Positions 1,447 through 27,259 of a stretch of DNA of 64,000 nucleotides are shown here, one piece after another. A program made the translations under genes and the position numbers. The first letter of the stretch is position 1. Each line of letters opens with the position of its first letter. Under the pieces are notes generated by a model. The model was not told where the DNA came from, ran no database searches, and worked only from the letters and a program-made list of their open reading frames with translations. Source of the stretch: Cyanophora paradoxa CCMP329 (Eukaryota; Plantae; Glaucophyta); contig QPMI01000445.1 of the NCBI GenBank assembly GCA_004431415.1, positions 186,001-250,000 on the forward strand, given 5' to 3'.

Positions 1447-4400
1447 TCAGGTGATTCCTAACTCTCGATTTAGCGGGTCCCGAAAACTCAACGGCCCAGC
1501 ATGGCAGCAAGCTTGCAGGGCAGGCAGAGGGAGTTCACTGGGTGGGACGAGGGTCCGAGGGCCCCGCTGGACGAGACGGGGACGACAGAGAACGCAGTCA
1601 TCTGCCCCGTGGGGAGGTCGTCGAAGTTGAACGCGGTCTGTGAGCCGGGCACGGTGCCGACGGGCAAGCCATCCTTGAGGACCATGTAATGGGTTGGCGC
1701 CCCCGTCGACGGGTGCTCCCACGTGAGCGTTCCTGTCGTGTTGGACACGATGCCTTGGTCCACGTTCGTGAGCTGGACGTTGGACGGGGCGGAGGGGTGC
1801 GGGGCAGGAAGACCCTTCGAAGCTGCATCGCCCACGCCATCCGAAGACGGCACCACGACTGGCGCAGAGCGGCCGGCGGGCGAGGGCCCATCGGTCGTGA
1901 TCGGCGTGATTTCCACCTTTGCACCAGCAGGGATGTTCGAGATGGGGTACTCGTTGATCTGTCCACCCGATGGGGGCAGGGTCGCAACGGGGTTGCCGTT
2001 CACACTGACTGAGTATCTGCCCAGAACGGGTCAGCTTTGGAAGCTTTGCAAACCAACTTGGAACTCGGCATCGCGATTCAATCGCTTCCCTGCTTTTCAG
2101 AGATGGGACTCTGGTACGTATACGCACCCTTGCAGGCGGGACGATTTGTACTCCTTTCCAGACGGTGTGCTCCACTTGAGCAGCACAGAAGAGCCGTCGG
2201 AGGAAGTCGGCGCCGCTGTCAGCGCGATAACCCCACGCGAAGCATCTCGAGGAGGAGCTGCCACCGCGAGCGGGAACGAGGCGGTCTCGGCGTTGCCGAC
2301 GGCGGTCATTGGAACCACGCGGTATGTAGCGGCGGAGCCGCCCGCTTGCGGGGCGGGGACGGAGGCGGACGTCTGAGCGCCGGGGACGGCCGCGACCATC
2401 TTGCCGTTGGCAACCACAGCGTACGTTGAAGGCGGACCGGCTGCCGGGTGGCGCCAAGACAGCTTCCCGCTCGAGCCACTTCCCGGTGCTGCAGTCAGCA
2501 GCAGGTCCGATGGTGCCTTCTCATCCGGAGCCGAGGATCGCTGTCCGGCACTAGGAGTGGACATAGGAGCGGACGGCAGAGAGCCAGAGAAACCCAGATA
2601 GGGGGCTTCAGGGACAGGGCTAGGCCCGATATTGTACGTATCAGCACCGTCGCTGTCCGGATACGGCTGCCCTGGCTTCCTTCGCCGGGCGGAGCCGAAA
2701 GAAGTGTTCCGGGCCGTTGAAGACTGGAATCCGCCGCGGTCGTCGGCGAGAGACAAAAGGGGGACCTGCGGGCTAACCGGCCCGCTCGGCACACCCGCCG
2801 GCGAGAGCGGCACCACCGAGAATACCGCAGGCGCCCCCGGCTGCGCATGCAGGCCCGTCGCCGTGAAGGCGTTCGTGGCGCCGCCCGAGGCGGGGACGGT
2901 CGCGATCTGCTGGCCGTTCTTGAGCACGCCGTACCTGCGCGCAGGCGGCCGCCCGGCCCGTCAGCAGCCCGAACGTCGCGATCGCGAGCCCGCCCATCCC
3001 CGCGCGATTTTTGCGGCCGGGGCCCCGCGCACTGCGAGATCGGGCCGTAGGCAGCGCCACGCGGGCGGTTCCACGAGAGCTTCGCGCTGGAGCCCGAGGC
3101 CGAGTCCGGTGCCGCCGTGAGCACGATGTTCGAGCCAGGGTCGGACGGGATGCCAGCCGAGAGCGGGGCCGAGGCCGGGCCGGGCACGCCGCCCGGGCCC
3201 AGCGGCACGACTACCAGGCTCGTCACGCCGTCGCGTGGCAGGTCCGAGACACTCGTCGAGGTCTTGCTGCCCGAGACGGTGCCGACGGGGACGCCGTCCT
3301 TGAGGACCTGGTAGCTCTGCGGGGCGCCCGTCGCCGGGTGATTCCAGGAGAGGGTGCCCGAGCTCCCGCCCATCATGCCCGCCGAGACGTTGTTGAGCTG
3401 CAGGTTCGACGGGGCGGCGGCCCTGGCGCCCGCGAACGGCCCGCTGGCGCCGCCGGCCGCGCTCGACGGCGTCACCGGCACCTGCTGGCTGGCAGGGCCA
3501 GTCGGGCTGCCCGACGGCGCGAGCGGCACAACGGAGAAGACGGCCGGCGCGTTCGGCTGCAGGCCCGTCGCCGTGAACGTGTTCAGCTCGGCGCCCGACG
3601 CGGGCACTGTCGCGATCTGCTGGCCGTTCTTGAGCACGGCGTAGGACGCCCTGCGCAGTCGATGGACCCGAGTCAGTTTTCGTATCCATTTCGCGATCGC
3701 ACCGCGGAACGCGCGCTGCCGCAGCTGCAGGCGCCGGTGCGCACGGAGAGCCCATGCCCGAGGCGCCGCCGCGCGGCCGGTTCCACGAAAGATTCGCGCT
3801 GGTGCTCGAGGCCGGGGCGGCGGTGAGCGTGAGCTCCGAGCCAGGGTCGGACGGGATGCCGGCCGCGAGGGGGACGAGGCCGGGCCGGGCGCGCCGCCCG
3901 CGCCCAGCGGCACGACGACCAGGCTCGTCACGCCGTCGCGCGGCAGGTCCGAGACGCTCGTCGAGGTCTTGCTGCCCGAGACGGTGCCGACGGGGACGCC
4001 GTCCTTGAGGACCTGGTAGCTCTCGGGAGCGCCCGTTGCAGGCGGGCTCCACGAGAGGGTGCCCGAGATGCCGCCCATGAGGCCCGACGAGACGTTGGTG
4101 AGCTGCAGGTTCGAGGGGGCCGAGGGGACGCCGCGGCCCGCCCCCGCGAACGGCGAGAGCGGGACATCGAGGCTCCCCGGCCCGCTCGGCACACCCGCCG
4201 GCGAGAGCGGCACCACCGAGAATACCGCAGGCGCCCCCGGCTGCAGGCCCGTCGCCGTGAAGGCGTTCGTGGCGCCACCCGAGGCGGGGACGGTCGCGAT
4301 CTGCTGGCCGTTCTTGAGCACGCCGTACCTGCGCGCAGGCGGCCGCCCGGCCCGTCAGCAGCCCGAACGTCGCGATCGCGAGCCCGCCCATCCCCGCGCG

Positions 4401-7400
4401 ATTTTTGCGACCGGGGCCCCGCGCACTGCGAGATCGGGCCGTAGGCAGCGCCACGCGGGCGGTTCCACGAGAGCTTCGCGCTGGAGCCCGAGGCCGAGTC
4501 CGGTGCCGCCGTGAGCACGATGTTCGAGCCAGGGTCGGACGGGATGCCAGCCGAGAGCGGGGCCGAGGCCGGGCCGGGCACGCCGCCCGCGCCCAGCGGC
4601 ACGACTACCAGGCTCGTCACGCCGTCGCGCGGCAGGTCCGAGACACTCGTCGAGGTCTTGCTGCCCGAGACGGTGCCGACGGGGACGCCTTCCTTGAGAA
4701 CCTGGTAGCTCTGCGGGGCGCCCGTCGCCGGGTGATTCCAGGAGAGGGTGCCCGAGCTCCCGCCCATGAGGCCGGAGGAGACGTTGTTGAGCTGCAGGTT
4801 CGACGGGGCGGCGGCCCTGGCGCCCGCGAACGGCCCGCTGGCGCCGCCGGCCGCGCTCGACGGCGTCACCGGCACCTGCTGGCTGGCAGGGCCAGTCGGG
4901 CTGCCCGACGGCGCGAGCGGCACAACGGAGAAGACGGCCGGCGCGTTCGGCTGCAGGCCCGTCGCCGTGAACGTGTTCAGCTCGGCGCCCGACGCGGGCA
5001 CTGTCGCGATCTGCTGGCCGTTCTTGAGCACGGCGTAGGACGCCCTGCGCAGTCGATGGACCCGAGTCAGTTTTCGTATCCATTTCGCGATCGCACCGCG
5101 GAACGCGCGCTGCCGCAGCTGCAGGCGCCGGTGCGCACGGAGAGCCCATGCCCGAGGCGCCGCCGCGCGGCCGGTTCCACGAAAGATTCGCGCTGGTGCT
5201 CGAGGCCGGGGCGGCGGTGAGCGTGAGCTCCGAGCCAGGGTCGGACGGGATGCCGGCCGCGAGGGGGGACGAGGCCGGGCCGGGCGCGCCGCCCGCGCCC
5301 AGCGGCACGACGACCAGGCTCGTCACGCCGTCGCGCGGCAGGTCCGAGACGCTCGTCGAGGTCTTGCTGCCCGAGACGGTGCCGACGGGGACGCCGTCCT
5401 TGAGGACCTGGTAGCTCTCGGGAGCGCCCGTTGCAGGCGGGCTCCACGAGAGGGTGCCCGAGATGCCGCCCATGAGGCCCGACGAGACGTTGGTGAGCTG
5501 CAGGTTCGAGGGGGCCGAGGGGACGCCGCGGCCCGCCCCCGCGAACGGCGAGAGCGGGACATCGAGGCTCCCCGGCCCGCTCGGCACACCCGCCGGCGAG
5601 AGCGGCACCACCGAGAATACCGCAGGCACCCCCGGCTGCAGGCCCGTCGCCGTGAAGGCGTTCGTGGCGCCGCCCGAGGCGGGGACGGTCGCGATCTGCT
5701 GGCCGTTCTTGAGCACGCCGTACCTGCGCGCAGGCGGCCGCCCGGCCCGTCAGCAGCCCGAACGTCGCGATCGCGAGCCCGCCCATCCCCGCGCGATTTT
5801 TGCGGCCGGGGCCCCGCGCACTGCGAGATCGGGCCGTAGGCAGCGCCACGCGGGCGGTTCCACGAGAGCTTCGCGCTGGAGCCCGAGGCCGAGTCCGGTG
5901 CCGCCGTGAGCACGATGTTCGAGCCAGGGTCGGACGGGATGCCAGCCGAGAGCGGGGCCGAGGCCGGGCCGGGCACGCCGCCCGCGCCCAGCGGCACGAC
6001 TACCAGGCTCGTCACGCCGTCGCGCGGCAGGTCCGAGACACTCGTCGAGGTCTTGCTGCCCGAGACGGTGCCGACGGGGACGCCTTCCTTGAGAACCTGG
6101 TAGCTCTGCGGGGCGCCCGTCGCCGGGTGATTCCAGGAGAGGGTGCCCGAGCTCCCGCCCATGAGGCCGGAGGAGACGTTGTTGAGCTGCAGGTTCGACG
6201 GGGCGGCGGCCCTGGCGCCCGCGAACGGCCCGCTGGCGCCGCCGGCCGCGCTCGACGGCGTCACCGGCACCTGCTGGCTGGCAGGGCCAGTCGGGCTGCC
6301 CGACGGCGCGAGCGGCACAACGGAGAAGACGGCCGGCGCGTTCGGCTGCAGGCCCGTCGCCGTGAACGTGTTCAGCTCGGCGCCCGACGCGGGCACTGTC
6401 GCGATCTGCTGGCCGTTCTTGAGCACGGCGTAGGACGCCCTGCGCAGTCGATGGACCCGAGTCAGTTTTCGTATCCATTTCGCGATCGCACCGCGGAACG
6501 CGCGCTGCCGCAGCTGCAGGCGCCGGTGCGCACGGAGAGCCCATGCCCGAGGCGCCGCCGCGCGGCCGGTTCCACGAAAGATTCGCGCTGGTGCTCGAGG
6601 CCGGGGCGGCGGTGAGCGTGAGCTCCGAGCCAGGGTCGGACGGGATGCCGGCCGCGAGGGGGGACGAGGCCGGGCCGGGCGCGCCGCCCGCGCCCAGCGG
6701 CACGACGACCAGGCTCGTCACGCCGTCGCGCGGCAGGTCCGAGACACTCGTCGAGGTCTTGCTGCCCGAGACGGTGCCGACGGGGACGCCTTCCTTGAGA
6801 ACCTGGTAGCTCTGCGGGGCGCCCGTCGCCGGGTGATTCCAGGAGAGGGTGCCCGAGCTCCCGCCCATCATGCCCGACGAGACGTTGTTGAGCTGCAGGT
6901 TCGACGGGGCGGCGGCCCTGGCGCCCGCGAACGGCCCGCTGGCGCCGCCGGCCGCGCTCGACGGCGTCACCGGCACCTGCTGGCTGGCAGGGCCAGTCGG
7001 GCTGCCCGACGGCGCGAGCGGCACAACGGAGAAGACGGCCGGCGCGTTCGGCTGCAGGCCCGTCGCCGTGAACGTGTTCAGCTCGGCGCCCGACGCGGGC
7101 ACTGTCGCGATCTGCTGGCCGTTCTTGAGCACGGCGTAGGACGCCCTGCGCAGTCGATGGACCCGAGTCAATTTTCGAATCCATTTCGCGATCGCACCGC
7201 GGAACGCGCGCTGCCGCAGCTGCAGGCGCCGGTGCGCACGGAGAGCCCATGCCCGAGGCGCCGCCGCGCGGCCGGTTCCACGAAAGATTCGCGCTGGTGC
7301 TCGAGGCCGGGGCGGCGGTGAGCGTGAGCTCCGAGCCAGGGTCGGACGGGATGCCGGCCGCGAGGGGGGACGAGGCCGGGCCGGGCGCGCCGCCCGCGCC

Positions 7401-10400
7401 CAGCGGCACGACGACCAGGCTCGTCACGCCGTCGCGCGGCAGGTCCGAGACGCTCGTCGAGGTCTTGCTGCCCGAGACGGTGCCGACGGGGACGCCGTCC
7501 TTGAGGACCTGGTAGCTCTCGGGAGCGCCCGTTGCAGGCGGGCTCCACGAGAGCGTGCCCGAGGTGCCGCCCATGAGGCCCGACGAGACGTTGGTGAGCT
7601 GCAGGTTCGAGGGGGCCGAGGGGACGCCGCGGCCCGCCCCCGCGAACGGCGAGAGCGGGACATCGAGGCTCCCCGGCCCGCTCGGCACACCCGCCGGCGA
7701 GAGCGGCACCACCGAGAATACCGCAGGCGCCCCCGGCTGCAGGCCCGTCGCCGTGAAGGCGTTCGTGGCGCCGCCCGAGGCGGGGACGGTCGCGATCTGC
7801 TGGCCGTTCTTGAGCACGCCGTACCTGCGCGCAGGCGGCCGCCCGGCCCGTCAGCAGCCCGAACGTCGCGATCGCGAGCCCGCCCATCCCCGCGCGATTT
7901 TTGCGGCCGGGGCCCCGCGCACTGCGAGATCGGGCCGTAGGCAGCGCCACGCGGGCGGTTCCACGAGAGCTTCGCGCTGGAGCCCGAGGCCGAGTCCGGT
8001 GCCGCCGTGAGCACGATGTTCGAGCCAGGGTCGGACGGGATGCCAGCCGAGAGCGGGGCCGAGGCCGGGCCGGGCACGCCGCCCGCGCCCAGCGGCACGA
8101 CTACCAGGCTCGTCACGCCGTCGCGCGGCAGGTCCGAGACACTCGTCGAGGTCTTGCTGCCCGAGACGGTGCCGACGGGGACGCCGTCCTTGAGGACCTG
8201 GTAGCTCTGCGGGGCGCCCGTCGCCGGGTGATTCCAGGAGAGGGTGCCCGAGCTCCCGCCCATCATGCCCGCCGAGACGTTGTTGAGCTGCAGGTTCGAC
8301 GGGGCGGCGGCCCTGGCGCCCGCGAACGGCCCGCTGGCGCCGCCGGCCGCGCTCGACGGCGTCACCGGCACCTGCTGGCTGGCAGGGCCAGTCGGGCTGC
8401 CCGACGGCGCGAGCGGCACAACGGAGAAGACGGCCGGCGCGTTCGGCTGCAGGCCCGTCGCCGTGAACGTGTTCAGCTCGGCGCCCGACGCGGGCACTGT
8501 CGCGATCTGCTGGCCGTTCTTGAGCACGGCGTAGGACGCCCTGCGCAGTCGATGGACCCGAGTCAGTTTTCGAATCCATTTCGCGATCGCACCGCGGAAC
8601 GCGCGCTGCCGCAGCTGCAGGCGCCGGTGCGCACGGAGAGCCCATGCCCGAGGCGCCGCCGCGCGGCCGGTTCCACGAAAGATTCGCGCTGGTGCTCGAG
8701 GCCGGGGCGGCGGTGAGCGTGAGCTCCGAGCCAGGGTCGGACGGGATGCCGGCCGCGAGGGGGGACGAGGCCGGGCCGGGCGCGCCGCCCGCGCCCAGCG
8801 GCACGACGACCAGGCTCGTCACGCCGTCGCGCGGCAGGTCCGAGACGCTCGTCGAGGTCTTGCTGCCCGAGACGGTGCCGACGGGGACGCCGTCCTTGAG
8901 GACCTGGTAGCTCTCGGGAGCGCCCGTTGCAGGCGGGCTCCACGAGAGCGTGCCCGAGGTGCCGCCCATGAGGCCCGACGAGACGTTGGTGAGCTGCAGG
9001 TTCGAGGGGGCCGAGGGGACGCCGCGGCCCGCCCCGCGAACGGCGAGAGCGGGACATCGAGGCTCCCCGGCCCGCTCGGCACACCCGCCGGCGAGAGCGG
9101 CACCACCGAGAATACCGCAGGCGCCCCCGGCTGCAGGCCCGTCGCCGTGAAGGCGTTCGTGGCGCCGCCCGAGGCGGGGACGGTCGCGATCTGCTGGCCG
9201 TTCTTGAGCACGCCGTACCTGCGCGCAGGCGGCCGCCCGGCCCGTCAGCAGCCCGAACGTCGCGATCGCGAGCCCGCCCATCCCGCGCGATTTTTGCGGC
9301 CGGGGCCCCGCGCACTGCGAGATCGGGCCGTAGGCAGCGCCACGCGGGCGGTTCCACGAGAGCTTCGCGCTGGAGCCCGAGGCCGAGTCCGGTGCCGCCG
9401 TGAGCACGATGTTCGAGCCAGGGTCGGACGGGATGCCAGCCGAGAGCGGGGCCGAGGCCGGGCCGGGCACGCCGCCCGCGCCCAGCGGCACGACTACCAG
9501 GCTCGTCACGCCGTCGCGCGGCAGGTCCGAGACACTCGTCGAGGTCTTGCTGCCCGAGACGGTGCCGACGGGGACGCCGTCCTTGAGGACCTGGTAGCTC
9601 TGCGGGGCGCCCGTCGCCGGGTGATTCCAGGAGAGGGTGCCCGAGCTCCCGCCCATCATGCCCGCCGAGACGTTGTTGAGCTGCAGGTTCGACGGGGCGG
9701 CGGCCCTGGCGCCCGCGAACGGCCCGCTGGCGCCGCCGGCCGCGCTCGACGGCGTCACCGGCACCTGCTGGCTGGCAGGGCCAGTCGGGCTGCCCGACGG
9801 CGCGAGCGGCACAACGGAGAAGACGGCCGGCGCGTTCGGCTGCAGGCCCGTCGCCGTGAACGTGTTCAGCTCGGCGCCCGACGCGGGCACTGTCGCGATC
9901 TGCTGGCCGTTCTTGAGCACGGCGTAGGACGCCCTGCGCAGTCGATGGACCCGAGTCAGTTTTCGAATCCATTTCGCGATCGCACCGCGGAACGCGCGCT
10001 GCCGCAGCTGCAGGCGCCGGTGCGCACGGAGAGCTCATGCCCGAGGCGCCGCCGCGCGGCCGGTTCCACGAAAGATTCGCGCTGGTGCTCGAGGCCGGGG
10101 CGGCGGTGAGCGTGAGCTCCGAGCCAGGGTCGGACGGGATGCCGGCCGCGAGGGGGGACGAGGCCGGGCCGGGCGCGCCGCCCGCGCCCAGCGGCACGAC
10201 GACCAGGCTCGTCACGCCGTCGCGCGGCAGGTCCGAGACGCTCGTCGAGGTCTTGCTGCCCGAGACGGTGCCGACGGGGACGCCGTCCTTGAGGACCTGG
10301 TAGCTCTCGGGAGCGCCCGTTGCAGGCGGGCTCCACGAGAGCGTGCCCGAGGTGCCGCCCATGAGGCCCGACGAGACGTTGGTGAGCTGCAGGTTCGAGG

Positions 10401-13400
10401 GGGCCGAGGGGACGCCGCGGCCCGCCCCCGCGAACGGCGAGAGCGGGACATCGAGGCTCCCCGGCCCGCTCGGCACACCCGCCGGCGAGAGCGGCACCAC
10501 CGAGAATACCGCAGGCACCCCCGGCTGCAGGCCCGTCGCCGTGAAGGCGTTCGTGGCGCCGCCCGAGGCGGGGACGGTCGCGATCTGCTGGCCGTTCTTG
10601 AGCACGCCGTACCTGCGCGCAGGCGGCCGCCCGGCCCGTCAGCAGCCCGAACGTCGCGATCGCGAGCCCGCCCATCCCCGCGCGATTTTTGCGGCCGGGG
10701 CCCCGCGCACTGCGAGATCGGGCCGTAGGCAGCGCCACGCGGGCGGTTCCACGAGAGCTTCGCGCTGGAGCCCGAGGCCGAGTCCGGTGCCGCCGTGAGC
10801 ACAATGTTCGAGCCAGGGTCGGACGGGATGCCAGCCGAGAGCGGGGCCGAGGCCGGGCCGGGCACGCCGCCCGCGCCCAGCAGCACGACTACCAGGCTCG
10901 TCACGCCGTCGCGTGGCAGGTCCGAGACACTCGTCGAGGTCTTGCTGCCCGAGACGGTGCCGACGGGGACGCCGTCCTTGAGGACCTGGTAGCTCTGCGG
11001 GGCGCCCGTCGCCGGGTGATTCCAGGAGAGGGTGCCCGAGCTCCCGCCCATCATGCCCGACGAGACGTTGTTGAGCTGCAGGTTCGACGGGGCGGCGGCC
11101 CTGGCGCCCGCGAACGGCCCGCTGGCGCCGCCGGCCGCGCTCGACGGCGTCACCGGCACCTGCTGGCTGGCAGGGCCAGTCGGGCTGCCCGACGGCGCGA
11201 GCGGCACAACGGAGAAGACGGCCGGCGCGTTCGGCTGCAGGCCCGTCGCCGTGAACGTGTTCAGCTCGGCGCCCGACGCGGGCACTGTCGCGATCTGCTG
11301 GCCGTTCTTGAGCACGGCGTAGGACGCCCTGCGCAGTCGATGGACCCGAGTCAGTTTTCGAATCCATTTCGCGATCGCACCGCGGAACGCGCGCTGCCGC
11401 AGCTGCAGGCGCCGGTGCGCACGGAGAGCCCACCGAGGCGCCGCCGCGCGGCCGGTTCCACGAAAGATTCGCGCTGGTGCTCGAGGCCGGGGCGGCGGTG
11501 AGCGTGAGCTCCGAGCCAGGGTCGGACGGGATGCCGGCCGCGAGGGGGACGAGGCCGGGCCGGGCACGCCGCCCGCGCCCAGCGGCACGACGACCAGGCT
11601 CGTCACGCCGTCGCGCGGCAGGTCCGAGACGCTCGTCGAGGTCTTGCTGCCCGAGACGGTGCCGACGGGGACGCCGTCCTTGAGGACCTGGTAGCTCTCG
11701 GGAGCGCCCGTTGCAGGCGGGCTCCACGAGAGCGTGCCCGAGGTGCCGCCCATGAGGCCCGACGAGACGTTGGTGAGCTGCAGGTTCGAGGGGGCCGAGG
11801 GGACGCCGCGGCCCGCCCCCGCGAACGGCGAGAGCGGGACATCGAGGCTCCCCGGCCCGCTCGGCACACCCGCCGGCGAGAGCGGCACCACCGAGAATAC
11901 CGCAGGCGCCCCCGGCTGCAGGCCCGTCGCCGTGAAGGCGTTCGTGGCGCCGCCCGAGGCGGGGACGGTCGCGATCTGCTGGCCGTTCTTGAGCACGCCG
12001 TACCTGCGCGCAGGCGGCCGCCCGGCCCGTCAGCAGCCCGAACGTCGCGATCGCGAGCCCGCCCATCCCCGCGCGATTTTTGCGGCCGGGGCCCCGCGCA
12101 CTGCGAGATCGGGCCGTAGGCAGCGCCACGCGGGCGGTTCCACGAGAGCTTCGCGCTGGAGCCCGAGGCCGAGTCCGGTGCCGCCGTGAGCACGATGTTC
12201 GAGCCAGGGTCGGACGGGATGCCAGCCGAGAGCGGGGCCGAGGCCGGGCCGGGCACGCCGCCCGCGCCCAGCGGCACGACTACCAGGCTCGTCACGCCGT
12301 CGCGTGGCAGGTCCGAGACACTCGTCGAGGTCTTGCTGCCCGAGACGGTGCCGACGGGGACGCCGTCCTTGAGGACCTGGTAGCTCTGCGGGGCGCCCGT
12401 CGCCGGGTGATTCCAGGAGAGGGTGCCCGAGCTCCCGCCCATCATGCCCGACGAGACGTTGTTGAGCTGCAGGTTCGACGGGGCGGCGGCCCTGGCGCCC
12501 GCGAACGGCCCGCTGGCGCCGCCGGCCGCGCTCGACGGCGTCACCGGCACCTGCTGGCTGGCAGGGCCAGTCGGGCTGCCCGACGGCGCGAGCGGCACAA
12601 CGGAGAAGACGGCCGGCGCGTTCGGCTGCAGGCCCGTCGCCGTGAACGTGTTCAGCTCGGCGCCCGACGCGGGCACTGTCGCGATCTGCTGGCCGTTCTT
12701 GAGCACGGCGTAGGACGCCCTGCGCAGTCGATGGACCCGAGTCAGTTTTCGAATCCATTTCGCGATCGCACCGCGGAACGCGCGCTGCCGCAGCTGCAGG
12801 CGCCGGTGCGCACGGAGAGCCCACCGAGGCGCCGCCGCGCGGCCGGTTCCACGAAAGATTCGCGCTGGTGCTCGAGGCCGGGGCGGCGGTGAGCGTGAGC
12901 TCCGAGCCAGGGTCGGACGGGATGCCGGCCGCGAGGGGGGACGAGGCCGGGCCGGGCACGCCGCCCGCGCCCAGCGGCACGACGACCAGGCTCGTCACGC
13001 CGTCGCGCGGCAGGTCCGAGACGCTCGTCGAGGTCTTGCTGCCCGAGACGGTGCCGACGGGGACGCCGTCCTTGAGGACCTGGTAGCTCTCGGGAGCGCC
13101 CGTTGCAGGCGGGCTCCACGAGAGCGTGCCCGAGGTGCCGCCCATGAGGCCCGACGAGACGTTGGTGAGCTGCAGGTTCGAGGGGGCCGAGGGGACGCCG
13201 CGGCCCGCCCCGCGAACGGCGAGAGCGGGACATCGAGGCTCCCCGGCCCGCTCGGCACACCCGCCGGCGAGAGCGGCACCACCGAGAATACCGCAGGCGC
13301 CCCCGGCTGCAGGCCCGTCGCCGTGAAGGCGTTCGTGGCGCCGCCCGAGGCGGGGACGGTCGCGATCTGCTGGCCGTTCTTGAGCACGCCGTACCTGCGC

Positions 13401-16400: not shown

Positions 16401-19400
16401 TGCCCGAGGTTCCGACCAGAAATCCAGTTGAGACATTGTTGAGCTGTAGATTGGAGGGCGCAGACGGGGGCGTGACCGGTGGACCACCGACCTCGTCGGC
16501 GCCTGGCAGCACGACGACGTGATTTATCGGCGCAGCCCCCGGTAGCGACGCTCCTGTACTGGCGATAGACGACGCGTCGGATTTCCGCTGAGTGTAGTAC
16601 AAAATACCTGCTGCCGCTAGGAGAGCAGTCGCTCCGACTGCCACAGTAATCGGAATGACGTAGGGCTTCGAGTCTGAGCCTCCCGGGGAGGTCTGAGAAT
16701 GTGCAACGTGAGGTCGATTCGGTAGGCGTATGGGAAGCGTACACGCAGACCTCTTTGTCCGGCTCATATGTTTGCCAATAGGATGCCGCTGATTTCGAAG
16801 ATGTTGCTGCAGGCGCACTTGGGACAGAGATGCTTGCAACCTTAAGAGCACAAAGGTCAATTGCATTACCAACACGAAACATGCCGAGAAAGGAGCATAC
16901 GGTGAAGGTCGTCTGTTTCATCCAGCAAAACAATTAAGAGCACGTTAGGTTTCCCAAACCACTTTTGGAAAACAGGAATTTTTAGCGCGCACCAAATGGT
17001 CGCTATCGTGTCAAATTTGCAGGGCGAGACCGTTATCGGACGCAAAAAGAGAGTTTATCGGAAACATGAACAACCGGCGCACCAGAACGCCCTTGCGTAC
17101 CACACTTGCTGCACAAGGAGTTAATGACTGTAGCGATTGCGACCTGGCTGTACTAGCTGTAAAGAATTTCCAATTTGGGCCAGTTACCCTGAATTCGGTG
17201 TCCGAGTTGTTCACCGCAAAAATGTCTTTCTCGAGATCTATGTCTCCACCGCATCTCTGCCAAGCCTTCTTCGTAGTGTTCCCTGTTAAAAGTTGGCGGT
17301 TGGTATCAAAGTCCGTGAGGAATTGAATAACAAAATAAAGGCAGCAACTCACAAAAGACAAACGCGAGCGTGGTGTTCGGTCTCTCGGTCTGATACCACT
17401 GCATATCGAATTACTGTCGGACTGCCTCTTCAATCAAGCAGTGCTTACAGGGAACGGAATTTCAAAGGTGATGTTTCGCGGAAGGTCCATGACCACTGTA
17501 TCGTAGACCACCACGTCGAGAATGCCGCCTGCCGGAGAAAACGAATGCGCAAGGCAATATTACTCTGTAATCCAAGAGTCAGTAATTCGAGCGTGGTGTA
17601 CCTACGATCGTTGCGCGCCCAACGATACTTCCACTGTCGCCCGCTTCAAAGCGACTTGAGTAGGGGTTTCTCGCCAGGTTTTGCAGGACGACCCCAAAGC
17701 CTAATAGAAATGAAATGAGAGCGATGCAAAATGAGCTTTGATATTTATTTTTTGCTATTTCCATCCTATGCCGCACATCCCACGTACCATCCCGTCCGTC
17801 GCCTCGAGGAGCAAGACCCCGTATTTCAGGCTGTGGGAAAAGCGTCACGTTGTGAAAGCATCCTCCTACATATAACTGGGTCTGGCTCGCACCCCTGGGA
17901 TGTACGCAGTAGCCGGTGCAAGGCGTTTGCTGGGGTTCGGCAGCGATGAAAATGGATACATATCTGAAGTGCGTGGAGCCTTAGAATGCAATATGACATA
18001 GATAAAGACTCTAGATCTGCTGGCGGGTGAAGCGGTATAGCTTTGAATCGGCCACCTCGTCTGTCCGTGAAGCAGATTTTGGCTGCCGTGACCGCAACTC
18101 TGTTTGCCGCTTTCTTGTCCAGCCCCTGCCATTCGCCAAATTAAATGCAAATCATCCACTGTATGCATTTGCGCAGACCTGCTTGCAGGTATCGCACTCG
18201 ATTGCGCTAAAAAGATGGCGACCGTCAATGCGAGTTCGAGAACGGTTCAATAGCTATAGGCCTATAATTACCGCTTGTGCATTCCCTTGATGACCTGCAA
18301 CAGCAAACGTTATTACACAGATTCATGTTGAACAGATAGTTGGCTCATACAAACCTCGTCGAGCTGAATGGCCATCGGGCTCTCCACTTTCTCGCCGCTA
18401 GCGCTCTCGTTCACAGCGAAGTTGTCGCTCGAAAGAACACCGTCCGCCGCAAGCGCCAACTATCCATAAATAAGTTGATTTGAATACGCCGTGCCAAAAT
18501 GGCAAGACAAAAATGAAGGGAGCTATTTCGCAAGAGCATCGGACCGTCCCAAGGAGGTCCTCCTGTCCCGCAATCGAGCACGGATCCATGCCTTTGACCA
18601 GGCGGGCCTGGCACCCAAAGAAAACGTCCTGAGACGATGGTGTACAGGTGCTGCGAGCGATTGATTCACGGCGCCGTTGAGCATGACATCGCAAGAACAC
18701 GCTCGCACCGACTGACGAGCTCGCTTAGCTGGTTGAACAGAGCAAGGACCGACAGCTTCTGATCCTGGGTCTGCTCCAGGTAAGGAAACGGTACACCCAG
18801 CAGGATGAAAAAGGGCTTCAAATCGAACCATGTCTTGTTGCGCGGACGCATCGCAAGCCTTGGTAATCATTGATTCAACGACGCTCCGCGTTTGTGGATC
18901 GTCGATCTTGTTAGACGCGTACGGATCTGAAACTCGTTCAATTTATTTTAGATCATATATACGTTTCTCGTAATCACCTTGGCTGACGGGAGGAAGGTTG
19001 CTCTTGAGTACTGGCGTCACGACGGACAGGATCTGCTCTGCGGGGAGGCTTGAACTTAACACATTCTTCGCGGCCTCAATCGACGCCTCTTTCGTGGCTG
19101 GCTTGCTGACGTTAGGGTAAAGCTTGCACTCTGGCAAGATTCTTTCGTCAGGGCAGATACGCATACAGCTCACGAAACATATTGTTTGCACCAACAACGG
19201 CGCCGTTCGCGTCGGCGATGATTCCGACGAGCGTCACTGGTAGTCCGGCCGGCAGCAGCACATCCAGTATGTTTGAAGATTCCTGTGGCGCCACAACCGG
19301 AACGCGCGTCCCGTCCGACTCAAGCCGCCGCAACGCGTATGTGAGCGGCTCTCCACTTGGGTCGCTTGCCGTGAAGCCAAGCATGGACACATTGAACTTC

Positions 19401-22400
19401 GTGATGAGCGCGCTGCCCTGGGCTGGATTGATGGTGCAGTTCCCAGCGGTTGGAGGACCCAGAATCCTCACAAGGACTTCGGACGTCACTGCATAAGAGA
19501 TCAAATTTGATTTTCAGAATCCCAACAGCTCGCAACTGTGCGCACCCGTCTCGTCCGACGGGGCCCCTGGATAGCGCGCGAAGCACCGAAACTTGTACGT
19601 TTTTCCAAGCTGGAGCGGAGCGCGATTGTCGGCAAAGAGGCGGAGGAAGAGATCCGCATTTGTTCCTCCAGCGGCAGTGTAGGTGCTAAAATCAACGCCC
19701 GCGAGCTCCGGCTCGCCAACAGCGTCGGACCAGCCCATCTCCGCCACGTTCACAAAGTTCGGGTCCGTCGGCACGCGGGCCATGCATCGAATCACGGCAT
19801 CACGGCTGGACGGGATGCGCAGTGGGTCCTTAGCTGGCGAGAGGCTCATCTGCAAGGTTATTAGAAGACATTAAAGATTGAGAATTTATTGGAAGACTGA
19901 CGTCGGTGGTAATGAGGGGGAGAGGTTTTTCCGTGACAAGGACGTGAACGAGGGTCTGATCCTCCGAAATGGAGCCGTCCGGGCAGCGCGAACGAATGTA
20001 GAGGTGCATGGTGTAGTTCTTGCCCGCCACAAGTCCCGCTGGGTGTGATTGAATACGTGTGCGTGCACAAGGTTGAGGTCAGTCCCATTTATACGTAATT
20101 GAAATCAATTACCAATTTTCTGCTCGGATGCCCCGGACCAGTCCGGAATCAGAGAAACGGTCTTGTTGATCGACGGTCTGCGGCGTTATGGAGCAGTTAT
20201 TACCGGGAGTCACATGAAAGAGAAACACGGAGTTGCGCACCCGAGATTGAACAGGCTCTGCGCGCTCTTGAAAGGGTCGAGGTACGGAACAAGCGACCAA
20301 GTGTACTCAAAGACAGCCTTTGCCGAGCAAGAGGGGTCGTAAGAACTGCGATCGCTCAACGTAACGTCTTGTACACGGAAATTGAAAAATGCAAACGTAC
20401 GGAGAGCTGTCAAAGCGGATTGGATATCGGTCGGGCACGATCCTGTAGCCTCCCGCAATAATAGCTTTAACAGCCGCAAGGGGCGGGAGGATGACAATGT
20501 CGCAACGCGTCGTATCAATGCTGTAACGGAGTCCGTGTGGTCGCGTCGAGTTGACCCGCAGACTGGGTGTGCACGTGTAGATTGCGTCAGCAACAGATCA
20601 AGCGAGGTATATATGTAAACTGGAAATATACGCACTACAGTGTCCAGTTTGAGTTTGCTACAAGTTGGGCTGCGGGATGCATGATATCATTCAAAGGCAT
20701 CATCGCTAAAAAGCATTCATTCTATATGTATATAGCGAACAAAGCATGAAAACGCTCACGCATGCCGCCTGATGCAAGAGCAGGGAGAATGCTAAGAGGG
20801 AAGCTCGGATTCGGCCCCCACTCAGCAATCACGTTGCTCGAATTGAAGTTCTCCTTCCAGGGCACGAGCCTCCAGAAGTTTGTCAGCGGTGTCGTCGGCG
20901 CGTCCGGCCGCGTGGGAGCGAATCCGGGGTCGTAGCTCGGCTCGCCCGTGATCGGAAGTGCTTGGTCAGCGGGGGTGGACTTCGTGAAGGGCCCAGCAAT
21001 GATTGCGATGACTTCGGGGACGGGCAGCACGACGATCACGCAGGTCGTGAAGTTTATGGAGTTCGGAATGCCTGTGGCCGCTGGGCGCGTGGTGTTGACT
21101 GCGCACGAAGACTCCTTTCAGGCATAGTGAAATAATATTATACATTCCGGAAGACGGTAACAAGCACTTACCCATCAGCCACAAAGTGTAGTTGCTCCTC
21201 GATCGAAATCCGGCTGTTTCGAAGACATCACGAATCTCAGAAATGGGATGCGCTTAGCAGTCGACAGCTTCTGCAGAAAAGAAAAGACTATGTATTTTTA
21301 TTCAAGGCTTGGGGCAGAGCGCACGCAGTCCCTGTGCGTCTTCAGCACGGAAAGAAATGAGCTTCTGGGGGCTCGGCCCGATCTGCTGGATGGCTCGCGT
21401 CGAGTTATAGGGGTCACCGAGCGGAACCAAGCGCCAGGTGTACTCCAGCACGGCATTTTCCTCCACCGGCTTCGACTCGTCATATGGCATCTCTACGTCG
21501 AAGGACGGGGAGCCGTCGATGGGGAGCGCGGGCCGCAGGGCGAGGTCGAGGATCTTGGGGTTCTCGTACGCGATGATTGCTATAACGCCACGATGCGGAG
21601 GGCATGGATTCGTAATATTCACATTGTTGGACCTGGCCTCGCGCCAGCCGAATCGGTTCAGCACGTAAAGAACGAATCGGTGGGTCCCGAACGAGTGACA
21701 CCGCCGTGGATCAATGAACGCTCTGGTCACTTCCTGTTCTACGGCATCGGGATTGATGGGGTCGTAAACTGTTACGTTCCGTTCGACGTTCCCGTCAGGG
21801 CTCATCTGTGCACACATGTAATTCGGTCAAACAGGCCAAAGCTCGATCGAGAGAGCTCGACCGTTACCCACTTTTTGAAGAATTCCAAAGTACTGCAGCA
21901 CTGGAAACCTTGGATTGGTCCACGTGGCTCTTGAGAGCGTTAAGTTGACACCCGCCGCTGATCACGAGCATCGAATTTGAAGTCAACGTTCGAACACAAA
22001 CTAAGCAGAAGTGCAACCTGCAATTGCACTTACGCATGAACGGATCGGAATAGTTTTCTGCAGTGCCCTCTTTGAATACAATAGAGTAGCTGAAAGTGAT
22101 GCGCTCCCCGGGCTGGATTCTGCTGGTTTTCGCTTCTTCGAAATCGAACATAATCGTCTGCGCGAAAAATGAAGGTATAAATCAGATCAAACCATCGTCA
22201 AAATCGTGACCTCGAGAGATAATTAAAACGAACAAGCTTGTAATCCCCCGTGACCGTCGCTCCGACCGTCGCGTAAGGCACGTGAAGCGCTTTTTGTTCG
22301 GGAACGCCCCCTTGCCAACTCGTGAGGGCCCAAGGCGGATTCGCGAAGCCAGACGAAAATCCTGGAGCGTTTGTTGGGTTGTTTGTGTATTCACGCCCGT

Positions 22401-25400
22401 AGAACACTCGCGAGCTGTCATCTAAGGACGGCAGGTTGAGTATGCTGATCGATATCGCAAACAAATTATTGAGAATCGCCGGACCGGTTGAAACGTAGCC
22501 CACAAAGCAGCGGTCTAGATACCGTCCCTTTGCCCCGACGGAGGCGACGTTTCCAGAAGCCCCTGAACAGATGCGTCGATGGGTTTATCATGCGACGCTG
22601 ACTCGAAAATCAAAAGTATGTCGAACCCGGAAGGCGCGACGCAGCCACCTGGGAGTAGACTTTATTCTACCGAGGAGAGATTATTTTAAAACAAAGCAGC
22701 GAAAAGCGAGTGAAGATCAAAGAGCAAATTCAACCTGAGTCGCTGCGCAGAGCAAGTTTGAAGTCAAAGTGAGCTCAAATTGCAGGTGTTAGAGCTTATC
22801 AATAAAGGCAATTGAAGTCTATGCAACGGAGAGGTCGCTGCTCTCAGAGCAGCTCGATGATTGAGAAGCAGCGACGGTATTGGAATACGTAGCCGCGCAT
22901 GCTCGCAGAGCGAGTTATAATTATATAAAATTATGATCAAGAGCAGTAAAGGAAAAGGGCGCCAACGTTCTACCCACGCGTCCTCCTTCAAAATGCAAGC
23001 GCACCGTAGAGGTCTGCTCGGCACAAGGAGGAGAGCGCATAAGAGTTTGCTTCTGTTTAAAAACGTAAAGGTCATAATCGCACCTCCTCCGGCGGAAAGT
23101 TCTTCATTTTGCCTCGCAGGACCCCTACAATAGCGACGTTGGTGAAGTTGGCGATAGTATATATTGCGTAATATTCCGAACCAGTATGTTTTGCTAAAGA
23201 ATGTTGCCGTGTCGGCCGTTTCTTCAGGCTCTCCAGCCGTGGTCCCGAATTGAGAGTCCTGATCTGCTGCAGGTTTAGTTTGGTCGAGCTGTTTTCACAC
23301 ACAACCTCAGTCACCAGGGTCGACCTCTCTGCACGTGTATTTCATCATAAGTAAAAGCTAAAAGAGCGGACGGGATGATACGAGCCAGTACTAGTAGCAC
23401 CTGAGATAATAAGGAACGTAAGCGGGAGCAGTCCCCTCATTTTTGATTTCAACATCGATGTAGACTGCTCACAGGTTTAAAGTTGATCACGAGTACTCGA
23501 TAGCAGCAAAAAAACGCACTGATCATGTCGGTCATGTCAGTCACGAGGTGGGTGTGCGTGAATGAAACAAGGGAATTGTGGTCGACGGCTTTATGGATCA
23601 CGGTGACTCCCAAATCGTCGACTGACTTGGACACAATGCTTCCCTTGAGAGCCGTTGAGTTTGCTCCGGAGTAAGCTGAAACGGCAGAGACGGTAGACTA
23701 GTCAGCCGATGGTTTTAGCCAGATGCGGCAAGAAGCGGAAATCAGGTACTGGTGCTTTCGAAGAACTGGCACTGTCCATGCGCTTGTGATCCCGGATTCA
23801 CTCTCGCATCGCAACTGACATTCCTTCGTAGCCCTGTAGAGGAAGTCCATGGCCATCCACAGATATCGCGATCGATCAGCGTGCGTCGCAACCCCGCCTT
23901 CTCTACAAATTTAGGGACAAAGCGCGCTGCTTACCATGCTTTGATACAGAAACCATGAAACGAGCACAGTGAGTTCGCAGATCGCAAGCGCGCATCGCGC
24001 GTCCGCACAAAATGATGCACTCACATTCCCAAAGCCCTGCGTGTAAGCCCTATCAGCTCGGCACAACACCAGCGGAAGGTTCGCATCACCTTTCCGTTGA
24101 CCATGGTTCCCCACTAGCGCGTTTGGACGTTAGCGAAAAAACAAGCGAGCGATCGCGGTATAACGCGACCGCGGATGCACCCCCTCATACGGAGTTCCTG
24201 GCTGCTCTCAAGTAAATAACGCGCACGCACAAAATCGAAATAACAGTGATATCAATGAACGTTTGCACACCACAAAGTAATCCCTGCGCGCAATGGAGGA
24301 AGCAAAATTAAAACCGAGCACTGGATCTTTTCAATTCTGCTGCGGTGCACGCGCGCGTACCCGCAAACGGCAATCTGCCGGCCTTTCATCCATCCCTTCC
24401 CAGTGGCCTTGTCAAGCGTTGAGACATCGGGAATGTAATTGTCCCAGTCGGGCCACGCTGAAGGAAAGCGCATCGGCTTGAAATAACGATCACAGGTATA
24501 CGATATCTACACGAAAAAGCGCAGACTAACGCACAATTCCAGCCTGCGGACCGAAATTTGTGAGCGGAAATGCGTCATAGCAGCAAAGGGAATCAAAAAG
24601 CATTCACCGTCCGCATCACTGTCAGCGAAAAGACCTGTGGTAACGATAGTGTCTTCAGCAACATGCGCAGTATTTGAATTCGAGAGTTCTTCCGCTTTTC
24701 GAACCAATTGCGGAAAGCGTTGTCAGATGTGGCGATGAGGTGAGCCAGGAACGAGGAATTCGTGCCGGGTCCAGCGCATGCGTCCCTGTTGGAATTTCGC
24801 TCATGTGCTGCAGGGCTGAGCTCTACGAAAGCTCAAGTGTTACCAAAGGTGCCCTCGACATGGTGAAAGCCTGCGCAGATGTATTTGGAGCACGCAAGCA
24901 CATCTCTGGGCGATGGTCGAATCAAAACGTCTGGCATTAAAACTTGCAAGGCAAAAGAAAAGCCGCGGCACCCCGTGTAGATGTCAACGGCTTGCTGCAA
25001 TGGCATACTGATTGCTAAGCGTCCTCGAATCTCAAAGAGAGGCAAAGTCAGCAACGGAACAGCGGCTGCGCGCAAACAAAATGACGAGAGGGGAACAGTC
25101 AGTTCGTTTGCGGATTGTTTAAAGCTGACACAGCTCACATTGATCAAACGCTGCAGTGATTCCCGCGCTGCCTGTCCCCCAGACGTCGCTGTTGCGCACT
25201 CTGTTCTTCCTTCAGATATGCAGCCGCGCGGATTGAAGGAGCGGAATGAGGGGGCGAAAAATGCGAACCCGAAATAAAACTCTTGAGTAATTCGCCAGAC
25301 AGCGTCTTTCAGACATGCATGTGTGGAATATATATAGGAAAAACGGGGACGAACCAGTTCTGTTAGAGCTCGGGTAGGAAAAGAACTGTTCGCCGCTCAA

Positions 25401-27259
25401 AATTGCTGTAAGACGACAAGAGCTTAACTAATGCAGAGAAATATTGATATGAAAAACGATCGCTCGAACCGAGCCATCTGCACAACCGGAGACAGTTGAT
25501 AAAGCGATTGAGATCGAAGTAAAATAATAGATACATCGCCATACCTTGGGAAGCTTGCGCCTCCATCTTGGGAACCGCGGATACGCAGTCCCGTTTTACC
25601 ATAAGCAGTAGTATTGAGCCGTCGGACGAATCTAGTCCGAGTAATTGTCTCGTTGTTTCGTCGGCTGAGCAATGTTCGGCGTTAGACGCCTTAACTAATT
25701 AACAAGTCCTATTGAAGAGTATTTGCTTGAGTGATCGAATGTACCCGAGATAAGCTGTGCATGAGTGATCCTGAGTATACAAAGAACGATTATCACGATA
25801 GAAAGAGCCGGACCGTGTGGTTGGAAGTACTTGTAGGTGCCATCGTCCGAGTCTTGGACGGCCATACCGAATTTATACGTGGCCCCGCCTGGCCTTTCCA
25901 GTCTTAGGCACCACTGCCGTGGCAACGTTATCGGCTCGTCACAGGTGATCTTGTAATCCTTCACGTGCATATCGGTCATGGGTCAAAATACCTGCGGAGA
26001 AAGGATATATATTAAAATATTGCAAACCTTGGTTGGAATCGTTGCGCCTTGGGTGTTGTTGAAACCGTTGACAACATCCACGCCAAGTTTTATCCCGCAG
26101 GTTCCAATAGTTGTCATGTCAAGCATGCTCTCTGCGTATCATCAATCTTAAGTTTTTTGACTGGGTATGCGATTGACTAGAGGCATTAATATTGCACCAG
26201 GATGACAAGATACTGATGGAGCTTGCCGGCAGTACCCCGGGCAAAATAAGCACTCTTCAGGCTGTCCAGCTGTCGGGAAATATTGGCCCTGGATCCATTG
26301 CTGTCTGAACCGGTACTCGGTGAAAGACGCCTTGAAGTTGTACGAGTCGCTGAGTGCATCATCCTCGGAATCGGGGGTGGCCCCGGCGCCTTTCTTGTAG
26401 ACTCTGGATGAGCGTGAACATTTGCATGCGAATAAACAGGCATGATCATGAACGTTGACAACGTTAGCGGAAAACGGAAGCAGCTGCCGCACGTGAACCA
26501 GACAGCTGTCACGTTGACCGGCGCATTCGTCCTGCGGCTGCAGTACCACCTGCACTGAAGCGAGTTTGCACGATTCAAAGGATCTGAACGCAACGCGTCG
26601 CTGACCATGCGTCTGGAGAATTTTGAAGCAGAGAGCGCGCGCCATTCACGGACACGTAATGTTAGCGCGCATTGCGGAGACAGCTATGATCATGAGTTGA
26701 ATCCGATGTTTCGCACCGTACAGCCCCCGCTTCGTTCCTTGAGCTCCGCTCCCATAATAGGGATAATCCTTGGCTTTCTTGATTTCCCCATCCTTCTGGT
26801 TGACCGAGCCCGTCGGACGCCGGTAGGTCGACAGGAGCACTGCGATACTGTGAACTACAATTCGACGGGCACTGCATTTGCACAACCGGTCGCTCGCACC
26901 CTTCCCTGATTTCGAATCGAGAGGAACGGGGTTTGCGCTCAGCCAAGTGCTACCGTAGTAGTCGGGGTGTCCCGTCGCCCCCACCTCCTGAATCACGACG
27001 CATAGCTATAGTCAGCAGTGGCTCAGCATGCACCATATGCTGACATTTCGAACAGCGCTGGCATGCAATTGCACATGCGCACGCCGAAATCCTGATAGGT
27101 GACCTCCGGCTCCTCGGCCAGCGCAAGTCCGAGAAGCACGGCGGCGCCGATCACAGCCAGCAACGCGGCGACGGACGTCGTTGCCACGAAAGGCTGACCA
27201 GTTCTCCATCGCAGCCGATCGCGGTGCAGGCCTAGGCCGTGACAGGCCGCGGTGTGCAT
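1447..27259 (-). CDS. Giant multi-exon single-pass membrane protein: signal peptide - Cys-containing ectodomain - PKD/REJ-like modules - GAIN/GPS - TM - ~43 FN3 domains
   Basis: Hydrophobic leader at ~27120-27180 (SVAALLAVIGAAVLLGLALA-EE), REJ-type motifs at 19200-21800, and contiguous in-phase GT-AG exons traced by hand from ~17930 through GPS, TM and the FN3 array. Continuity from 27259 to ~18000 is inferred, not fully traced. The stop is at 1488, or at 1447 if a last intron is spliced. Confidence 0.6.
2770..16470 (-). repeat. Coding tandem array of 20 near-identical FN3-pair units (642, ~689 and ~706 bp), each containing one intron
   Basis: Repeated PSNLQL..GTLSW..P.SYQVLKDG..VGTV (FN3-A) plus LTAAP..LSWNRP..Y.VLKNGQQIATV..FTATGLQP..FSVVP (FN3-B). 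Unit anchors at about 3300, 4004, 4693, 5400, 6089, 6795, 7501, 8190, 8895, 9583, 10289, 10978, 11680, 12369, 13071, 13760, 14399, 15041, 15683 and 16345. Three divergent FN3 domains follow at ~1530-2510. Confidence 0.92.
16594..16666 (-). other. Single transmembrane helix-coding segment
   Basis: PYVIPITVAVGATALLAAAGILYY followed by TQRK (basic residues on the C-terminal side). Confidence 0.85.
16751..17700 (-). other. GAIN domain C-terminal part with GPS autoproteolysis motif, encoded by short exons and micro-exons
   Basis: Exons 17398-17353, 17282-17188, 17108-17083, 17002-16993, 16912-16901 and 16840-16751 are all GT-AG flanked and in phase. They splice to LAFVFWNTTKKAWQRCGG...QVWYARAFCDHLTTFTVASIS. 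Upstream exons give ARNPYSS and RNITFEIPFP. Confidence 0.8.
19190..21830 (-). other. PKD/REJ-like ectodomain modules
   Basis: Three modules with an S.S(Y/F)D..Y/F.W pattern (IDGSPSFD..LEYTW; ITGEPSYDP..LTNFW; LSDRSSYDP..FEYTW), plus the REJ C-terminal signature GPPTAGNCTINPAQGSALITKFNV..FTASDPSGEPLTY. Confidence 0.7.

Follow-up and report, generated by a model that had tools for sequence, protein, structure and literature searches.

In adhesion G protein-coupled receptors (GPCRs) and in polycystin-1, the GAIN/GPS module is known ahead of the seven-transmembrane (7TM) and eleven-transmembrane (11TM) region, respectively, where its cut exposes a tethered agonist. What would such a module do ahead of one helix and a titin-sized chain of FN3 domains? 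This question is raised by a locus of the early-branching alga Cyanophora paradoxa CCMP329, where the arrangement belongs to a multigene family. The locus lies on the minus strand of the window studied here, a stretch of 64,000 nucleotides (nt) of contig tig00020685 (QPMI01000445.1, positions 186,001 to 250,000), and all positions given below are those of the window.

Our findings point to one intron-rich gene (probability about 0.6) that runs from 21.8 kilobases (kb), or possibly from 27.26 kb, down to position 1488 and encodes a giant type-I single-pass membrane protein. From the N-terminus on, its product would carry a probable signal peptide and further candidate modules, then three PKD/REJ-like modules, the REJ domain and a GAIN-like domain, and finally a short stalk, the helix, 43 Cys-free FN3 domains of ~4,400 amino acids (aa) in total and a conserved tail with two cysteines. 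At the locus itself the domain order is present, the helix and the first FN3 domain share an exon, no further helix follows, and the evolution of the array is of the coding type. A first-pass annotation of the window had listed REJ, a GPS motif, a stalk, one transmembrane (TM) helix followed by QRK and tandem FN3 domains with no further TM segment, and each of these elements was located on the minus strand. The architecture it proposed is supported by the domain order both here and in the models of two paralogs, P0005 and P0074, whereas the homology to GAIN/GPS domains proved weaker than it had claimed.

One membrane helix and a chain of 43 FN3 domains

The exon that encodes the helix starts at 16692 and stays open through a linker into the first FN3 domain. 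Beyond it, no Kyte-Doolittle window (19 aa, at least 1.7) was found in any of the three minus frames between 16590 and 1300, in agreement with the earlier claim that a single TM segment is followed by no other up to the end of the FN3 chain.

The array was recognised by a repeat search as 20 copies spaced 639-706 nt apart; Tandem Repeats Finder missed it, its period exceeding 500. Unit lengths range from 642 to 706 nt, four units measuring 642-663 nt and the remaining sixteen alternating between ~689 and ~706 nt. With one unit as query, tblastn returned FN3-A, the first third of FN3-B, a gap and the rest of FN3-B, and unit-by-unit spliced alignment placed in each FN3-B one phase-2 intron of the form GTGCGC…CTGAC…GCGCAG. 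The length of this intron follows the unit type (54, 94 or 98 nt), and all 20 introns have a common phase, donor, acceptor and CTGAC branch-like motif. With the introns removed, exon lengths are a multiple of three in 16 of the 20 units.

Counting two FN3 domains for each of the 20 units and three diverged ones at 2516-1536, the chain holds 43 domains and ~4,400 aa, close to the ~43 domains and ~4,300 aa first proposed. The 3' end given earlier, 1447, was not borne out, the FN3 frame ending with a TGA stop at 1490-1488. Pfam fn3 (PF00041) matched the open reading frame (ORF) 12742-16875 with E 3e-28 and, with E 6e-36, the public model P0081 (tig00020685_g12962.t1, 1137 aa), which comes from the same contig and spans the last array units and the 3' end. 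Taken singly, FN3-B reached 24.6 bits and the terminal FN3 domain 22.9, slightly below the cutoff of 25.

Between unit types, the ratio of nonsynonymous to synonymous substitution rates (dN/dS) is 0.15-0.5. Since the exon differences are mostly synonymous and the three intron types cannot be aligned with one another, the array has evolved as coding sequence. The last 15 residues (1491-1535, minus strand), NSLCLPCKLAAMLGR, resemble the tails of P0076 (NAVCIPCMLAAMLQGK) and P0083 (NAVCILCMIAAMLQS), and the pattern N-x-x-C-x-P-C-x-x-AAML is common to the three paralogs. The conservation of this tail indicates that the present copy has a normal end. The conserved Cys pair that closes the FN3 chain could serve in lipidation or docking.

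The composition changes in a step inside the gene, the FN3 array (16.5-2 kb) having 75% guanine plus cytosine (GC) against 50-55% GC from 27 to 16.5 kb, and the GC content at third codon positions (GC3) is ~0.7 in the ectodomain exons. GC-biased conversion among the tandem repeats is a possible cause of the step.

From the REJ domain to the helix

The REJ domain of the earlier annotation was confirmed by profile search. The segment 19151-19513 matches Pfam REJ (PF02010) with E 2.5e-15 and 56.5 bits against a cutoff of 25, and the public spliced fragment P0001 matches the same family with E 1.4e-18 and 67 bits. P0001, a protein of 214 aa named tig00020685_g12963.t1 in EukProt, is 99% identical to the REJ exon of the window.

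The path from this domain to the helix was traced with a protein-to-genome aligner that handles GT/GC-AG introns, split codons and, optionally, frameshifts, the public paralog P0005 (tig00000131_g7474.t1) serving as guide. With frameshifts forbidden, the alignment covers 20042-16603 through ~20 short introns and scores 806, compared with 219 for the reversed guide; for the part from GAIN-B to the helix the scores are 227 and 80. Four frameshift marks had appeared in the frameshift-permitting alignment, and none was left once frameshifts were forbidden. In this regard, complex gene structures are typical of the Cyanophora genome, whose mean intron measures 86 base pairs and whose authors state that short introns trouble gene predictors (PMC6704402).

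The well-placed GAIN-B-like exons are 18125-… (GLDKKAANRVAVTAAKICFTD), 17830-17788, 17700-17602, 17528-17450, 17398-17353, 17282-17188 and 17108-17083, and other well-matched ectodomain exons read PEIRGLAPRGDGRD, GFGVVLQNLARNPYSS…, GGILDVVVYDTVVMDLPRNITFEIPFP, …ERPNTTLAFVF, WNTTKKAWQRCGG…TEFR and QVWYARAF. Tiny exons, among them VIKGMHK (23 nt) and RAIECDTCKQ (28 nt), occur in the helical region at 18179-19141. Between 18060 and 17830 the exon path is ambiguous, with two models, which is a weakness of the reconstruction. On the minus strand at 17829-18246, where GC is ~50%, each of the three phases contains a long open frame (126, 104 and 133 codons), and the overlap of these frames makes the path ambiguous.

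The GPS motif reads FWNTTKKAWQRCGG...QVWYARAF-C/DHL/TTFT/VASISVPSAP in the spliced alignment, with GT-AG introns in fitting phases (the slash in HL/T stands at the predicted cut). The H-L-T/S cleavage triad just before the first helix is present as CDHL/TTFT at this locus and as CTHL/TTFT in P0005 and P0074, whose GPS blocks are …WYLRGRCTHLTTFTTG and …YYARGRCTHLTTFTVG, respectively; the HL/T block is the best conserved among the paralogs. A drawback is that the cut motif at the locus rests on exons of 10 and 12 nt. As a rough estimate, the odds of meeting such AG/GT-framed exons in the right phase by chance over the stretch are ~1e-4 for DHL and ~1e-5 for TTFT. In the preferred model, a stalk of ~45 aa separates CDHL/TTFT from the helix, and the neo-N-terminus predicted from the HL/T cut is TTFTVASISVPSAPAATSSK.

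The donor hexamer GTGCGC (or GTGCGA) recurs on the minus strand at 27082, 19545, 18708, 17082 and 16992 as well as in all 20 array introns, and donors of this kind are much commoner in this gene than the usual GTAAGT or GTGAGT type.

A GAIN/GPS-like region next to the membrane

The juxtamembrane region may be read as a GAIN-B/GPS module, a reading for which profile comparisons and structural models give moderate, indirect support. In hhalign, the Cyanophora-only GPS alignment matches the same region of four other REJ proteins (96.8%, E 2.3e-10, 103 columns), the aligned columns including FWN…W..CG…C.HLT.F. Two of these four non-Cyanophora proteins have a Pfam GPS domain, and one of the two has in addition a sub-threshold PLAT match. 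A mixed profile matches the solved GAIN domains of ADGRG3, ADGRG6 and ADGRG1 with E values from 6.6e-7 to 1e-5.

Folds were predicted with AlphaFold2 on the paralog. The first model (P0005:545-985) has a predicted local distance difference test score (pLDDT) of 51 overall, with confident helices and a weak beta part; the helices that correspond to 18179-19141 reach pLDDT ~80. Foldseek gave nothing significant with this model, and a structural search of the PDB was swamped by helical repeat proteins. In the second model (P0005:700-962), the last 125 residues, which form the end of the ectodomain, have pLDDT 77-89. A structural search of 48,161 chains with this part returned the CD97 GAIN domain (Z 5.7 and 5.5), an axonemal protein (5.5), the BAI3 GAIN domain (5.1) and, at rank 6, the CELSR1 GAIN domain (4.6). 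By the tool's count only 3 of the 48,161 chains have Z of at least 5, two of them being CD97 GAIN, and the autoproteolytic ZU5/FIIND domains rank below GAIN.

The identification is weakened on several sides. With E values of up to 10 allowed, Pfam GPS (PF01825) matched neither the GPS regions of the paralogs nor two short open segments in this part of the window, one of them out of frame. The Cyanophora-only profile matched no solved GAIN domain in the PDB, a phmmer search of the PDB with P0005:280-1000 returned nothing relevant, and Foldseek found no significant match for the paralog models. GAIN domains take ranks 1, 2, 4 and 6 of the structural search, with Z values (4.6-5.7) that are modest. 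Moreover, fold and profile tests were made on public paralog models, the fold tests on P0005 and not on this locus. GPS-family clusters came up in a feature-cluster search with 0.84 at most, a value that we take as a hint and not as evidence. The GAIN/GPS call of the first-pass annotation is accordingly retained in part: homology through hhalign and a fold search topped by GAIN on the paralog speak for it, while Pfam GPS remains unmatched.

One intact gene, a decayed copy or two genes

Beyond the weaknesses of the exon path and of the GAIN assignment, further observations weigh against the one-gene reading. The deposited array sequence contains four 1-nt frameshifts, all of them homopolymer contractions, and public Cyanophora annotation cuts the locus into two models, g12963 and g12962. 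In addition, four probable RNA runs yielded no contig with 90% likeness to 16100-22000, a result that neither shows nor excludes expression, and a search for sequencing runs listed no RNA run holding the locus.

Were the frameshifts real, translation would break off shortly past 13.2 kb, and this copy of the family would be a decayed, silent pseudogene. The lack of RNA contigs would agree with this, and since every frame of DNA with 75% GC contains long open stretches, little can be concluded from the absence of stops. We consider decay improbable, however, in view of where the defects fall. They are all single-base losses in G5/C6 runs and recur across subtypes, the same homopolymer runs being affected in units of different subtype; one more loss lies inside an intron (G3 in place of G4 in unit 10), and this is the pattern of PacBio consensus errors (PMC6704402). 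Among units with 99-100% identity elsewhere, no other indels occur. PacBio RSII reads were assembled with Canu and Quiver, and the subsequent correction used Illumina reads that mapped at 95% similarity (PMC6704402); inside near-identical repeats a correction of this kind is bound to perform poorly. The four frameshifts are most likely PacBio consensus errors. Also at odds with decay are the ectodomain of 50-55% GC, readable without frameshift or stop through ~20 canonical introns, the intact C-terminal tail and a dN/dS below 0.5 between array unit types.

The split annotation would find an explanation if two genes were present, namely one for a REJ-GPS protein and another for a helix-FN3 protein that starts at an ATG near 16770 (MSRTKRSAC…) and is inserted as a type-II protein with its FN3 domains outside, that is, as a conventional surface protein. 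Public models do break between GPS and helix here and in the paralogs P0077, P0079 and P0082, the ATG is in frame and has five Arg/Lys residues upstream of the helix, and long, fast-expanding repeat arrays are common in surface proteins. Nevertheless, we regard two genes as very unlikely. The TTFT exon and the helix exon are only ~210 nt apart, and this gap is filled by the stalk exon and two canonical short introns, so that a 3' end and a promoter could not be accommodated. Moreover, the helix normally follows a GAIN domain directly (PMC3321182). The public models of P0005 and P0074 unite in one protein REJ or the GPS-like CTHL/TTFT, a single helix and FN3 domains; those of P0079 and P0082 begin inside the helix, a position that suggests an artefact of prediction. 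Several paralog models start or end in the middle of an FN3 domain or at the helix, as would be expected if predictions fail at frameshifts; those that start at the helix count against a continuous gene. The locus shows public Cyanophora annotation splitting giant repeat genes where the assembly is probably in error.

Topology of the FN3 array

In all known cases GAIN and REJ modules are extracellular, with GPS just before the first helix (PMC3321182). For the single gene favoured here, a cytosolic FN3 array is a reasonable inference from the presence of one helix and a candidate signal peptide, the KAK/QRK that follows the helix in paralogs, a mild positive-inside bias, the Cys-free array as against the Cys-rich ectodomain, and the di-Cys tail. 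Terminal Cys pairs of this kind are S-acylated on the cytosolic face.

An array on the extracellular or lumenal side of the membrane would result from an additional 5' helix, the lack of a cleaved signal peptide or a hydrophobic segment that does not span the membrane. The 5' 5 kb offer candidate exons only and the charge bias around the helix is weak, which leaves some room for such an arrangement and speaks against the topology proposed here; likewise, Ser/Pro/Gly-rich linkers and NxS sequons in FN3-A would fit a secreted glycosylated protein. However, paralogs do not conserve the sequon, the signal-peptide candidate is a strong one, and among the candidate exons just one further hydrophobic stretch occurs, which resembles an intron. 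Furthermore, the ectodomain exons hold many Cys codons, while ~4,400 aa of FN3 remain free of Cys until the terminal CxPC. On balance, we find an external or lumenal array unlikely.

Paralogs and comparison with known systems

A search with P0074 returned ten models from Cyanophora, spread over at least eight contigs, and, within the limits of the search, none from other organisms. As judged from sequence searches, the family is so far seen only in Cyanophora paradoxa, where it occupies at least nine contigs. The initial annotation knew of no described receptor with this architecture, and a literature search found no such architecture in the papers searched. A single helix after REJ and HLT, with a short tail, is known from other organisms. 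The novelty is the FN3 tail, not the single helix.

Two protist proteins, P0070 (7652 aa) and P0043 (846 aa), share with the Cyanophora protein REJ, an HLT motif, a short stalk and one helix, but their tails measure ~50-110 aa, compared with ~4,400 aa of FN3. The sea-urchin receptor for egg jelly 1 (suREJ1) likewise has REJ, a juxtamembrane HL/T, a short stalk, one helix and a short tail. In polycystin-1 (PKD1), REJ is followed by GAIN/GPS with an H-L-T triad before the first helix, as in the Cyanophora protein; in contrast, the PLAT domain and the 11TM or channel-like region of polycystin-1 have no counterpart here, the ORF after the helix giving no PLAT match and no second hydrophobic segment being present. 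Adhesion GPCRs share the GAIN-like domain with HL/T by the membrane, and CD97, BAI3 and CELSR1 provide the best fold matches, yet their 7TM region, on which a tethered agonist could act, is absent from the Cyanophora protein, which has one hydrophobic segment and an ectodomain of the polycystin/REJ type. Among adhesion GPCRs, a single-pass isoform exists for Drosophila Cirl (PMC13197933).

On the side of the array, the first domains after the helix in a paralog match Pfam Ig_RIMBP2. Intracellular FN3 domains occur in titin, obscurin, twitchin, RIM-binding proteins and the integrin beta4 tail. The Cyanophora protein differs from these in that near-identical tandem FN3 domains are joined directly to a membrane helix and a GAIN-like ectodomain, and no Ig or kinase domain was found in it.

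Possible role of the protein

In the model suggested by this architecture, the ectodomain would face the outside or a lumen, and an FN3 rod of ~150 nm, if extended, would face the cytosol. The GAIN domain would cut itself at HL/T, the terminal Cys pair might be lipid-anchored, and the protein would serve as a mechanical link or spacer from the membrane to the cortex. In this regard, Cyanophora has alveolar sacs under its plasma membrane (PMC6704402). A self-cleaving spring or tether, with GAIN cleavage as its fuse, is speculation. In its full form, the proposal is that a self-cleaving GAIN ectodomain, lacking a 7TM or 11TM partner, is connected by one helix to a ~150-nm cytosolic rod of 43 FN3 domains whose di-Cys end sits on the alveolar sacs or cortex, cleavage acting as a mechanical fuse; we offer it tentatively, as possible though well short of probable.

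If the proposal is true, the family would be a force-bearing link from surface to cortex and would point to a role of GAIN older than receptor signalling. A protein of this design would show that the module can have a function that is structural or mechanical alone, and it would open the effects of GAIN cleavage in the absence of a receptor core to study in an accessible unicellular organism.

Gene features, 5' region and other observations

The features of the gene are collected in Table 1. The putative first exon comprises 59 codons with an A-x-A-type site after a signal-peptide-like core; it carries the strongest hydrophobic window of the region (2.72), and its GC1/GC2/GC3 values of 0.75/0.51/0.74 are of the coding type. 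It is plausible that this signal-peptide exon at 27259 is joined to the downstream gene. Within the stretch of candidate exons that follows, ten open segments gave no domain match in a Pfam search. A hydrophobic stretch at 25814-25740 was considered as a second helix and rejected, as it looks like a T-rich polypyrimidine intron. Each of the three ~110-aa modules upstream of REJ aligns with residues 226-257 of P0005.

Table 1. Positions in the window of the features assigned to the gene, from 5' to 3'
Feature	Position	Strand	Basis or remark
Putative first exon	27083-27259	minus	ATG at 27259; signal-peptide-like …FVATTSVAALLAVIGAAVLLGLALA/EEPEV…; GTGCGC donor
Upstream stretch of candidate exons	21827-27082	minus	Patches of coding-like codon periodicity (periodicity scan)
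Three tandem ~110-aa modules (…VIAIIAG…ALPI.G.PSYD…Y.WRLVP…)	20213-21826	minus	tblastn self-comparison, E 1e-4 to 1e-8
REJ-domain exons	20042-19902, 19849-19546, 19488-19196	minus	Pfam REJ, P0001, spliced alignment; last donor uncertain
Helical Cys-containing region, GAIN subdomain-A-like	18179-19141	minus	Spliced alignment to P0005, hand check against P0003
GAIN subdomain-B-like exons	17083-18125	minus	Spliced alignment, hhalign, fold search
Putative 10-nt exon C-GAC-CAT-TTG	16993-17002	minus	Completes Cys codon and adds DHL; flanks …CGATAG and GTGCGC…
Putative 12-nt exon TTFT	16901-16912	minus	Residues just after the predicted HL/T cut; flanks …AAACAG and GTATGC…
Stalk exon VASISVPSAPAATSSKSAASYWQTYEPDKE (VASISVPSAP…)	16751-16840	minus	Alternative GC-AG model ends at 16808
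Single membrane helix VIPITVAVGATALLAAAGILYY, then TQRK	16594-16659	minus	Hydropathy; open exon from 16692
20 tandem units, each FN3-A and FN3-B	2731-16464	minus	Repeat search, tblastn, Pfam fn3, dN/dS
Frameshift, G4 where five sister units have G5	13191-13216 (unit 4)	minus	Same defect at 9015-9040 (unit 10)
Frameshift, C5 where six sister units have C6	11534-11556 (unit 7)	minus	Same defect at 3859-3881 (unit 18)
Three diverged FN3 (one with intron) and conserved tail …NSLCLPCKLAAMLGR	1488-2516	minus	Includes stop codon; P0081 ends here

Elsewhere in the window, a second GC-rich island (32-48 kb) has a weak FN3-B-like match on the plus strand at its edge (32265-32378; 44% identity over 41 aa, E 5e-4), and its ORFs gave no clear reading. 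On the same strand, 58365-58685 weakly matches the repeat region of P0070 in tblastn (E 6e-4, 29% identity over 112 aa), and a further giant gene for a surface protein may have an exon there.

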